Below, piece by piece: positions 22,191 to 33,722 of a stretch of DNA of 64,000 bases. The translations under genes and the position numbers were made by a program. The stretch lies in IMG/VR virus record IMGVR_UViG_3300044796_000657, positions 366,230 to 430,229 of that record; one strand, 5' to 3'. The notes below the pieces were generated by a model. That model searched no databases. It had not been told where the DNA came from and saw only the letters and a program-made list of their open reading frames with translations. Position 1 is the stretch's first letter; the number at the start of each line of letters is the position of its first letter.

Positions 22191-22772
22191 ATGGAAACCT
22201 TTAAGCAGTTTTTTGAAGTTCAAAGTGGTGTCATTGTAGCTTATCACGGAACGCCCCACGGACTTTTTGATAAATTTGACGCATCAAAGCGTGGTGAAGG
22301 CGCTGACCAAGGCGACTTTGGCAATTATGGTAATGGTTTTTATTTTACCATTGATAAAGCAATGGCAATAAGGTATGCTAAAAAACTTACTGAACGCCAA
22401 ATTGGTAATCAGCCATATTTGTACACTGTCAATTTGAGAATATTCAAACCATTCTCTTTTGACAGGTTGCGTAATTATGAAAAAGACTTTTGGGATACAA
22501 TTAAGGCTAATCATGCGGCAGGAATGAAACACGGTTTGATAAACATTTCAAGTGAGCAAGAAAATGCTATAATGAAAAAGTATCAGACGACAGAAGATGA
22601 AATTGAGTTTATGAAGTGGTTAGAGTCGAAGATGAATGACAATTGGGAAGATGTGAACTTCGCACAAATATTGAAAAAGAAAAGATATGATAGTGTTGTG
22701 ATCAAAGGCGGCGAAGAAATAGTCGTCTTTGACGAACATCAAATACAGATAATCAAAAGAGAACCAGTATGA
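22191..22772 (+). CDS. ADP-ribosyltransferase-like protein
   Basis: AYHGT, FDKFD, YGNGFYFT, C-terminal EEIVVF. Confidence 0.7.
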   Translation: METFKQFFEVQSGVIVAYHGTPHGLFDKFDASKRGEGADQGDFGNYGNGFYFTIDKAMAIRYAKKLTERQIGNQPYLYTVNLRIFKPFSFDRLRNYEKDFWDTIKANHAAGMKHGLINISSEQENAIMKKYQTTEDEIEFMKWLESKMNDNWEDVNFAQILKKKRYDSVVIKGGEEIVVFDEHQIQIIKREPV

Positions 22773-24580: not shown

Positions 24581-24651
24581 GCGGAATTGGCATATCGGTT
24601 GTGCTCCAGCCTTCCAAGCTGGCCAGACGGGTTCGACTCCCGTATCCCGCT
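24581..24651 (+). tRNA. tRNA-Gly(UCC)
   Basis: ccagc-ct-tcc-aa-gctgg; U73. Confidence 0.9.
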
Positions 24652-24653
24652 CT

Positions 24654-26579: not shown

Positions 26580-27305
26580 CTATGGTGTTACTTTGGCTCT
26601 AAGAACCTTTGCGGTTTGCGTCCTACGGGTCGCCTTCATATCGGTCACTACTTCTCGGTAATCTTGCCGGGTCGTGATGGGGCTGAAGTCCTCATAGCCA
26701 ATTATCACGCTCCGCAAGAAACCAACTTGGAGGAGCTTGTTAAAGTTCTCAACAAATTCGGTGTAAACCAAATCAGAATGCAGCGTGATGTATTCAATGC
26801 CGAACTTTACTTCCGCCTTCTCTCAATTGCCGGTTTTGGCGATTTAGCCAGAATGCCGCAATTCAAATCGGCTGATGAAGACAAACAAACTGGTCAACTA
26901 CTCACCTATCCAGTCTTGATGACACACGATGTCGTCGGCTATGAGAACGTGTTGGTAGGTGAAGATCAGAAGGTGCATTTGGAATACGCTCGTAGGCTAA
27001 TTCGCAAATACAACAAAACCTTTAATGAAGAAGTTGTTTTGCCTCGTCCGATGATTGTTGGCGGGAAAGTTAAGGACTTGCGGAAGCCGACTGAAAAGAT
27101 GAGCAAGTCGTCACCTGATGGTTGTTTGTTCCTTGACGATACGCCCGACGATATTCGTACAAAATTGAAGGCAGCAACCACGACACCGGAAGGGATAGAG
27201 AACCTTTCTACATTGTACACTCATTTTGTTGGGCCTACAGTGCCTTCTATGAATTCTGAGCTTAAGTCTCAGTTGGCAGATGCTTTGATTGAGGCTTTTA
27301 AATAA
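26576..27305 (+). CDS. trpS: tryptophanyl-tRNA synthetase, shortened; probable +1 frameshift at 26591-26597
   Basis: GLRPTGRLHIGHY (HIGH), LTYPVLMTHDV, VGEDQKVHLE, KMSKS; no in-frame ATG before the Rossmann strand. Confidence 0.85.
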
Positions 27306-27324: not shown

Positions 27325-27507
27325 ATGCAAACCGCACCGTTAGGTCATTGGATAGCATTTTTCCTTTCCATGATCACATTGATATTTTTATCAGTGGTTC
27401 CAGCAACCGATTTATCAGTTAATCAAAAACTGATTACTGCTGTTTATTTATTTCTATTTGGCCTTATTGGATTTCTAATTGGGCGAATTGGAACAAAAAA
27501 AGATTGA
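27325..27507 (+). CDS. small two-TM membrane protein
   Basis: Two hydrophobic helices. Confidence 0.55.
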   Translation: MQTAPLGHWIAFFLSMITLIFLSVVPATDLSVNQKLITAVYLFLFGLIGFLIGRIGTKKD

Positions 27508-27532
27508 CTTTCTGTAATGATGCGGGTATAGT
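27504..27532 (+). promoter_or_regulatory. sigma70-type promoter
   Basis: TTGACT-17 nt-TATAGT upstream of the GlyRS-like gene. Confidence 0.65.
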
Positions 27533-27584
27533 ATCTCTATGAAACCCGGCTAGACCAAGGCCGATACTTTATGAGGATTTTGCG

Positions 27585-28310
27585 ATGGAAGCGTTGTATG
27601 ACAAAAATGGCTTAATGTTTTATTCGGAGCGGGAAGTCAAGTTGCGGGAACAGTTCCGTGATTACTTTGCGGATCGAATGAGGGAAACGTTGTTAGCGAC
27701 GAATCCTATGTGGCGGTTTTTGATGGTGGAAGCACCTCTGTTAACGCCCAACAAACACATCAACAAGAATTACACTGCCGAAGATGTATTCGTGTGTGAC
27801 GATCTAACCTTAAGGCCGGAAACGACGCCGGGTACTTATCAGTGGATTCGTTCCAAGTTTGATGACAGCAACAGTGGTTTTCGTCCCCCGATTTGCGTTT
27901 GGCAATACGGCAAGAGTTTTCGGCAAGAACAGGATCAAGTATCAAAGCATTGCCGGTTCAAAGAGTTTTACCAGCAGGAATTCCAGTGCGTCTTTACGTC
28001 GGATACTGCGAATGATTATCACACGGTTTTACAAAAACCGGTTGAAAAGATGATTCGTGATATGATTGGCTTGCCGACTCGGTTGGTGGTTAGTGATCGG
28101 TTGCCGGATTACAGCAAGAGTACAATGGATATCGAAGTAGACAACGGCGACAAGTGGATGGAAGTTTGTAGTATGAGCCTGCGAACCGATTTTCCCGGTA
28201 CGGTCAGTTTCACGACCAAAACGAAGGTTGTGGAAAGGGATCTGTTGGTTGCGGAGGTTGCCATCGGTTTAGATCGGTGTGTTTACAATTTCCTGCAAAG
28301 GGTAGATTAA
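27585..28310 (+). CDS. class II aaRS catalytic core, GlyRS (alpha2-type)-like, lacking anticodon-binding domain
   Basis: LRPETTPG, GKSFRQE..RFKEFYQQEFQ (motif 2), WMEVCS, EVAIGLDRCV (motif 3); ends soon after motif 3. Confidence 0.8.
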   Translation: MEALYDKNGLMFYSEREVKLREQFRDYFADRMRETLLATNPMWRFLMVEAPLLTPNKHINKNYTAEDVFVCDDLTLRPETTPGTYQWIRSKFDDSNSGFRPPICVWQYGKSFRQEQDQVSKHCRFKEFYQQEFQCVFTSDTANDYHTVLQKPVEKMIRDMIGLPTRLVVSDRLPDYSKSTMDIEVDNGDKWMEVCSMSLRTDFPGTVSFTTKTKVVERDLLVAEVAIGLDRCVYNFLQRVD

Positions 28311-33644: not shown

Positions 33645-33718
33645 GGGCCTATAGTTCAACCGGGGAGAACATCCAACAGGAATGTTGGAAGGTCGAGGTT
33701 CAAATCCTCATAAGCCCA
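33645..33718 (+). ncRNA. tRNA-like RNA with GGAA-capped 7-bp arm instead of a 7-nt anticodon loop
   Basis: gggccta/taagccc, D-arm gttc/gaac, tccaaca-ggaa-tgttgga, T-arm. Confidence 0.7.
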
Positions 33719-33722
33719 CTTT

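Follow-up and report, generated by a model that had tools for sequence, protein, structure and literature searches.

The 64,000-nucleotide window analysed here, the last 64 kb of the 430,229-bp IMG/VR virus record IMGVR_UViG_3300044796_000657 (97% complete by CheckV), carries a gene for a 241-amino-acid protein that we call mini-GlyRS. By its sequence and predicted structure, mini-GlyRS is a class II catalytic core derived from alpha2-type glycyl-tRNA synthetase (GlyRS), and it belongs to a large family found in huge phages. That it makes glycyl-adenylate from ATP and glycine is well supported by its conserved residues and by the structural model. We consider the chances evenly balanced that it goes on to transfer glycine to tRNA-Gly through the acceptor stem alone, a reading that draws on genomic context and on precedent among other synthetases.

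The original prediction, made from the DNA letters, had described a GlyRS-like protein of this length with class II motifs 2 and 3 and an LRPET motif, ending just past motif 3. All of these features can be read directly from the sequence, as can motif 1 (Table 1), and the likeness to GlyRS was borne out by profile and fold comparisons. mini-GlyRS matched Pfam PF00587 (tRNA-synt_2b) with an E-value of 2.4e-11 and 44.5 bits, above the 29.3-bit cut-off. Its top NCBIfam model was glycine--tRNA ligase PRK04173 (E 1.2e-13), with 50.7 bits falling far below a 312-bit cut-off, and TIGR00389 scored 21.8 bits, below its cut-off of 243.3 bits. The GlyQ model PF02091 (tRNA-synt_2e), which detects glyQ in five bacterial genomes, was not among the Pfam matches of mini-GlyRS, and no PHROGs family matched it. 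Sequence and profile searches of the PDB both returned alpha2 GlyRS first (E 1e-13 with the profile). An AlphaFold2 (AF2) model built on 51 homologues reached a mean predicted local distance difference test (pLDDT) score of 93.2, and fold matching (VIA) aligned it with N. equitans GlyRS at Z 23.6 and a root-mean-square deviation of 2.2 A over 229 of the 241 residues, and with human GlyRS at Z 21.8. Mycobacterium GlyRS gave the top Foldseek matches, with ProRS, SerRS, ThrRS, HisRS, the amino acid:carrier-protein (aa:CP) ligase Bll0957 and HisZ ranked lower, together with the polymerase-gamma accessory subunit. GlyQ, the alpha subunit of alpha2beta2 GlyRS, is likewise a catalytic-only class II subunit of about 300 amino acids that activates glycine, but it belongs to an unrelated subfamily and needs the tRNA-binding beta subunit GlyS.

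mini-GlyRS is probably homodimeric, as judged from structure prediction. The predicted homodimer scored 0.86 compared with 0.00 for the best control, three runs shared at least 95% of contacts, and the pLDDT of the partner chain was at least 89; in calibration, 20 of 30 solved pairs and one of 23 single chains scored this high. The predicted interface involves motif 1 (residues 46-55), the N-terminal segment and the hairpin at 69-76, as in GlyRS, and motif 1 is conserved across the family at E49 (89%) and P51 (82%).

The case for glycine activation comes from the active site. In M. tuberculosis GlyRS (MtbGlyRS), 14 residues have been named as contacting glycyl-AMS or ATP. Among them, the adenylate is touched by R197, E199, T209, F212, Q214 and R331, and the ribose together with a metal ion by E284, the glycine amine is held by the glutamate triad E165/E216/E324 with E324 oriented by E218, A326 excludes larger side chains, and Y264 is the lid tyrosine (PMC12208437). 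We mapped these positions with an HMMER alignment (chain index equals Mtb number plus 13) and with a MAFFT alignment including 14 canonical alpha2 GlyRS from bacterial and archaeal genomes. Aligned counterparts in mini-GlyRS were found for 13 of the 14 named residues, namely the whole triad and 10 of the 11 others, and the sole mismatch is MtbGlyRS T209, which corresponds to F125. The aligned pairs (Mtb/mini-GlyRS) are E165/E79, R197/R113, E199/E115, the [H/R] position/R124, F212/F128, Q214/Q130, E216/E132, E218/Q134, Y264/Y176, E284/E193, R291/R200, E324/E224, A326/A226 and R331/R231, and the spacing of motif 3 is identical to that of MtbGlyRS E324, A326 and R331. Q130 corresponds to a residue reported as typical of bacterial alpha2 GlyRS (PMC12208437), and at the position of A226 human GlyRS has Ser.

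Across 103 full-length family representatives, which share 26-60% identity with the window protein, active-site positions are 88-99% conserved. Apart from A226, those placed by both the HMMER and the MAFFT alignment (R113, E115, F128, Q130, R231, E193, the triad, Q134 and Y176) reach 95-99%, with E79, E132, E224, R113, R231, F128 and Y176 at 96-99%; E79 is kept in 100 of 104 sequences, Y176 in 98% of family members, and the position of A226 holds Ala in 80% and Ser in 15%. Because these residues are near-invariant despite such low overall identity, glycine activation is strongly inferred. The common fold, the three motifs, the triad, the lid tyrosine, the ATP residues and the predicted dimer interface are all shared with canonical alpha2 GlyRS (M. 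tuberculosis 8u2p/8t5n, T. thermophilus 1ati, N. equitans 5z5e).

By contrast, the canonical alpha2 GlyRS aligned here are 436-582 amino acids long, about twice the length of mini-GlyRS. The insertion domain between motif 1 and LRPET is absent, with about 20 residues in its place compared with 91-129 in the canonical enzymes, a loss that the original prediction had overlooked. The original prediction that an anticodon-binding domain is lacking also stands: canonical enzymes extend 115-121 residues past motif 3, whereas mini-GlyRS ends 10 residues past the motif 3 arginine R231, without the HGTP anticodon domain and the beta-hairpin linker. The next gene begins at the mini-GlyRS stop codon (TAATG, 28310), and no anticodon domain lies downstream of the open reading frame (ORF). 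Part of the N-terminal YxG loop is missing as well. The insertion domain of GlyRS occupies the site of the acceptor arm, and a Phe at the base of this domain stacks on A76 (PMC12208437). With the insertion and anticodon domains both absent, the two tRNA-holding modules of GlyRS are gone. In the short segment that replaces the insertion domain, Y63 is 78% conserved and position 69 is aromatic in 86%; that these two residues may stand in for the lost insertion-domain contacts is speculation. At the same site, a helical insert of about 70-90 amino acids, unrelated to the insertion domain, is present in part of the family.

The reduced architecture is a property of a whole family, whose size and conservation the original prediction had also overlooked. 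A word search found 1523 relatives, which among the 120 matches listed were 231-347 amino acids long and lay on contigs of up to 614 kb, and an exhaustive profile search returned 857 clusters at 50% identity with E <= 1e-3, 117 of them with E <= 1e-30. Full-length members among the best 150 clusters were about 205-352 amino acids long and none exceeded 352, indicating that none of these carries an appended anticodon domain. In trees with canonical GlyRS as outgroup, the family was monophyletic, forming a separate clade on a long branch with 100% SH-aLRT support. An explanation as a fragment or pseudogene was rejected in view of the intact frame, the consistent lengths, the 857 or more clusters and the near-invariant catalytic residues. 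Cultured carriers include Sinorhizobium phage Phosso, Xanthomonas phage XbC2, Brevundimonas vB_BpoS phages and Caulobacter CcrBL9-like phages, in which the gene is annotated variously as serine-tRNA synthetase, RNA synthetase class II, aminoacyl-tRNA synthetase or hypothetical. No near-identical published phage was found, and the nearest protein relative (65% identity) lies on a 5.7-kb contig binned in a Nitrosotalea metagenome-assembled genome, probably a mis-binned phage fragment. The searched literature held no description of a core-only GlyRS family. The only trace that we found is a remark in the supplementary text of Al-Shayeb et al. 2020 on a class II synthetase 'of unresolved specificity' encoded by a huge phage that carries a CRISPR spacer against the host GlyRS.

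The original prediction had named two findings that would refute it, a separate anticodon-domain partner elsewhere in the genome or a lack of catalytic activity. Neither was borne out in silico. The catalytic residues are intact and near-invariant, as described above. A partner was sought in the 430-kb record, and 184 kb of its 614-kb source contig lay outside this search; the record, classed as 'provirus', was cut from a JGI metagenome contig of 614,480 bp, so the phage genome may exceed what was searched. Within the record there was no HGTP anticodon domain (PF03129), no GlyS beta subunit (PF02092) and no PP-binding carrier protein (PF00550). PF03129 was likewise absent from 14 of 23 related huge-phage genomes, and the 10 matches in the other nine all fell inside ThrRS or ProRS genes. 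A free-standing GatB/YqeY-domain protein encoded in the tRNA island of the window was considered as a trans-acting tRNA-binding helper and rejected; among 24 genomes with mini-GlyRS only 5 encode this protein, which is therefore not an obligate partner. A role as conserved partner was also rejected for the small overlapping ORF downstream of mini-GlyRS, as the ORFs that follow the gene in five phages are unlike one another.

We propose that the homodimer would bind ATP and glycine, form glycyl-adenylate and then, most likely, pass glycine to the 3' end of tRNA-Gly. Given that the anticodon-binding and insertion domains are absent, recognition would have to be acceptor-only, by the acceptor stem and discriminator (G1:C72, C2:G71, G3:C70 and U73). 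Phage tRNA-Gly genes keep this bacterial acceptor identity set, including the tRNA-Gly(UCC) of the window, which is the only tRNA-Gly in the 430-kb record. Such an enzyme would provide a compact supply of Gly-tRNA that is free of the anticodon and of host GlyQS.

The genomic context favours a tRNA over a non-tRNA acceptor. The window contains 33 tRNA genes and the whole record 37. mini-GlyRS lies in the resulting tRNA island, next to genes for the TrpRS-like protein, the GatB/YqeY-domain protein and a peptide deformylase. A census of tRNA genes within 10 kb of the gene at 75 IMG/VR loci found tRNAs of any kind at 41, with tRNA-Gly as the commonest type (15 of the 41), lying about 30 bp away or closer in three loci. 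In Phosso-like phages, mini-GlyRS is placed between CysRS and Pth2, near an RNA ligase, an R2K ATP-grasp protein and a kinase-phosphatase. Reduced synthetases also count for tRNA charging, as the record encodes a compact PheRS and a shortened TrpRS-like protein, and ThrRS and ProRS are shortened in related phages; reduction of synthetases seems to be a general habit of these huge phages.

Precedents exist for tRNA charging by a core. A CysRS variant without an anticodon domain charges tRNA (PMC9437257), and like Glu-Q-RS (YadB) it represents a natural core that still acts on tRNA in the absence of this domain; unlike mini-GlyRS, both belong to class I, and each is dedicated to a single special tRNA or tRNA modification. 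The best model for charging by the core alone is the PylRS without N-terminal domain of Methanomethylophilus alvus (275 amino acids, 6jp2), a natural core-only class II enzyme that ignores the anticodon. It was matched by Foldseek with E 2e-11, and its sequence weakly matches the N-terminal half of mini-GlyRS (E 2e-5). PylRS differs in belonging to another subclass, in having another amino-acid pocket without the glutamate triad, and in serving a dedicated tRNA of unusual shape.

Several observations weigh against charging of tRNA-Gly. The insertion domain and its A76-stacking Phe are both missing, and residues 116-122, which form the tip of the motif 2 loop, vary among family members. For canonical GlyRS, much of the identity of the tRNA lies in the anticodon bases C35 and C36. 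tRNA-Gly is not clearly enriched near the gene, the 15 loci comparing with 13 for Arg, and the high score of the predicted dimer may stem from solved class II dimers already familiar to the model. Finally, a clade of Alphaproteobacteria keeps mini-GlyRS beside the housekeeping glyQ, which would fit a role other than plain Gly-tRNA supply.

These bacterial copies bear on more than one explanation. Forty loci in species genomes carry the mini-GlyRS gene, about 30 of which form a compact clade of Alphaproteobacteria comprising Phenylobacterium, a Caulobacter species, Devosia, Pseudaminobacter and Rhizobiaceae (within loci L098-L137, for example L105, L118, L120 and L123). Their GC content matches that of the host, and they lie amid ordinary chromosomal genes, with surroundings that differ between Devosia and Phenylobacterium. 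All five isolates tested had glyQ and a single copy of mini-GlyRS, and only 3 of 151 sampled Caulobacteraceae species carry the gene. No riboswitch or leader was found upstream of the bacterial copies, the only Rfam matches being unrelated 6S RNAs. In both trees the bacterial clade was nested within phage diversity, as sister to phage loci L050 and L033 (98% and 97% SH-aLRT). This nesting suggests that the gene passed from phage to bacterium and was then kept. Its persistence alongside a normal GlyRS would fit a second GlyRS with a special purpose, and would fit a non-tRNA function equally well.

One alternative is that mini-GlyRS is a glycine-adenylating ligase with a non-tRNA acceptor, such as a protein side chain, a carrier thiol, a nucleotide or a small molecule, in the manner of EpmA/PoxA, AsnA, the aa:CP ligases or Glu-Q-RS. 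We regard this as unlikely, though with a real chance of being correct. It would account for the absence of both tRNA-holding modules and for the host-GC copies kept amid metabolic genes by about 30 alphaproteobacterial species (with glyQ in each of the isolates tested), and a review of synthetase paralogues lists many such recruitments. aa:CP ligases (Bll0957, 3mey) are likewise truncated class II cores that have no tRNA-binding domain, glycine is activated by some of them, and Bll0957 is a close structural match (Z 20.9); they differ, however, in their origin from methanogen-type SerRS and in their acyl-carrier-type protein partner. The carrier-protein ligase idea of the original prediction was not supported, as mini-GlyRS is GlyRS-like rather than SerRS-like and the record encodes no PP-binding protein. 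Against a non-tRNA acceptor more broadly, no neighbour is conserved across phages or between bacterial genera, the bacterial copies lack an upstream riboswitch, and the phage context consists of tRNA and translation genes instead of biosynthesis genes. A stronger form of this explanation holds that the family as a whole is not a tRNA synthetase, and that a new GlyRS-derived glycyl-transferase modifying a non-tRNA target (protein, nucleotide or another component of the cell) via Gly-AMP is common to huge phages and to the few Alphaproteobacteria that gained it from them and maintain it next to normal GlyQS; we hold this to be improbable.

The acceptor could also be an unusual RNA, with anticodon-blind glycylation of suppressor or altered-anticodon tRNAs, of tRNAs with damaged anticodon loops or of tRNA-like RNAs, so that glycine would be placed at non-glycine codons or attacked tRNAs would be kept usable. 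The lack of an anticodon domain would permit such charging, the CysRS variant noted above serves a special tRNA, and one tRNA-like gene of the window has a four-base anticodon. In addition, a solitary CUA (amber-reading) tRNA lies 53-1875 bp upstream of mini-GlyRS in the Phosso-like clade (loci L020-L029; Phosso L001:5594-5669). However, these CUA tRNAs have G73, variable 2:71 and 3:70 pairs and tRNA-Lys-like bodies, and a disguised tRNA-Gly was rejected as their identity on account of G73 and a body most like tRNA-Lys. The linkage is confined to one clade and may thus reflect a single historical event, the record of the window has no CUA tRNA, and gene calls in the CUA clade look normal under the standard code. 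We consider glycylation of unusual RNAs quite doubtful. An inactive or regulatory relic, be it a truncated pseudogene, a HisZ-like subunit or a poison or hijacker of host GlyRS, appears very improbable. Truncation relative to canonical GlyRS and the presence of HisZ and the polymerase-gamma accessory subunit among the fold matches would fit a relic, but the breadth of the family, its intact frame, its consistent lengths and its near-invariant catalytic residues do not, and loss of catalytic residues of the HisZ kind is not seen. Moreover, the cultured hosts (Caulobacter, Brevundimonas, Sinorhizobium and Xanthomonas) use the unrelated alpha2beta2 GlyRS, glyQ being confirmed in five alphaproteobacterial genomes, and a mixed dimer with host GlyRS is therefore unlikely.

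The positions of the gene, its motifs and other features of the record are collected in Table 1.

Table 1. Features of the mini-GlyRS gene, its surroundings and the record. Residue numbers refer to mini-GlyRS.
Feature	Position	Strand	Remarks
Sigma-70-like promoter candidate, TTGACT-17-TATAGT	27504..27532	+	10/12 match; in the 77-nt gap before the mini-GlyRS gene
Shine-Dalgarno sequence, GAGGA	27573..27577	+	7 nt before the mini-GlyRS ATG; read from sequence
Coding sequence, 241-aa stand-alone catalytic core of alpha2-type GlyRS (mini-GlyRS)	27585..28310	+	Assigned from sequence, profiles, alignment and model
Motif 1, RFLMVEAPLLTP, residues 44-55	27714..27749	+	Core of the predicted dimer interface
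LRPET, residues 76-80	27810..27824	+	E79 is the first glutamate of the glycine-binding triad, by alignment to MtbGlyRS E165
Motif 2 and loop, GKSFRQE...RFKEFYQQE, residues 109-133	27909..27983	+	R113, E115, R124, F128, Q130, E132; then Q134
Lid-like LPDYS, residues 173-177	28101..28115	+	Y176 at the GlyRS lid-tyrosine position (MtbGlyRS Y264)
Motif 3, EVAIGLDRCVYN, residues 224-235	28254..28289	+	E224, A226, G228, R231
tRNA-Gly(UCC), candidate substrate	24581..24652	+	G1:C72, C2:G71, G3:C70, U73; no encoded CCA
Shortened TrpRS-like gene, 229 aa (gene callers: 213 or 229)	26616..27305	+	Directly upstream of mini-GlyRS; context
ART-PolyVal ADP-ribosyltransferase	22191-22772	+	In the tRNA island
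GatB/YqeY-domain protein, free-standing, 224 aa	18371-19045	+	Within the tRNA island
tRNA with four-base anticodon (GGAA)	33645-33719	+	ARAGORN; directly before three tRNA-Thr genes
PheRS, monomeric mitochondrial-type, 341 aa	G000:C1:270235-271260 (L007:1306-2331)		TIGR00469, 330 bits, above cut-off
Full-length TyrRS	L004:1141-2298	-	Elsewhere in the record

The mini-GlyRS ORF starts with ATG, and its N-terminus aligns with the N-termini of homologues. The original prediction had given the gene its own promoter. Position 27504 is indeed the first of a -35 hexamer in a site matching 10 of 12 consensus positions, with the TGA within TTGACT serving as the stop codon of an upstream 72-aa ORF. The coding strand has 17 sites with at least 10 of 12 matches and the opposite strand has 5, compared with 9.8 +/- 2.7 expected from Markov shuffles, a coding-strand enrichment that is only moderate, and a local 3.5-kb scan found promoter-like and terminator-like sites to be no commoner than in shuffled sequence. 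Given these counts, a promoter upstream of mini-GlyRS is plausible only. A hairpin at 27547-27563 was dropped as a feature, as the local scan showed no excess of terminator-like sites over shuffles.

The TrpRS-like gene directly upstream brings the number of reduced synthetases in this island to two. Its product keeps HIGH and KMSKS, matches phrog_37857 and has about 64 residues after KMSKS, where a typical bacterial TrpRS has about 130. Other neighbours of mini-GlyRS encode an NMN-adenylyltransferase-like protein, an Fe-S assembly protein and a peptide deformylase. The phage PheRS also matches the 'PheS-related mystery ligase SrmL' model, below its cut-off. In related huge phages (L088-L097), ThrRS is found without its N-terminal editing and TGS part, and ProRS without its insertion domain.

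If mini-GlyRS does charge tRNA, its subunit length of 241 amino acids would make it roughly the smallest aminoacyl-tRNA synthetase in nature, and it would be a natural counterpart of the engineered core fragments used in studies of the origin of the genetic code. Glycine identity could then rest on the acceptor stem alone, and genetic-code engineering would benefit from a small glycine-charging enzyme that ignores the anticodon. It would also explain the class II synthetases 'of unresolved specificity' in huge phages, together with a possible independence from host GlyRS (Al-Shayeb et al. 2020). If the target is instead not a tRNA, mini-GlyRS would represent a new recruitment of a synthetase core. 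On either reading, this is a large conserved family present in cultured phages and in bacteria, and it is therefore accessible to experiment.

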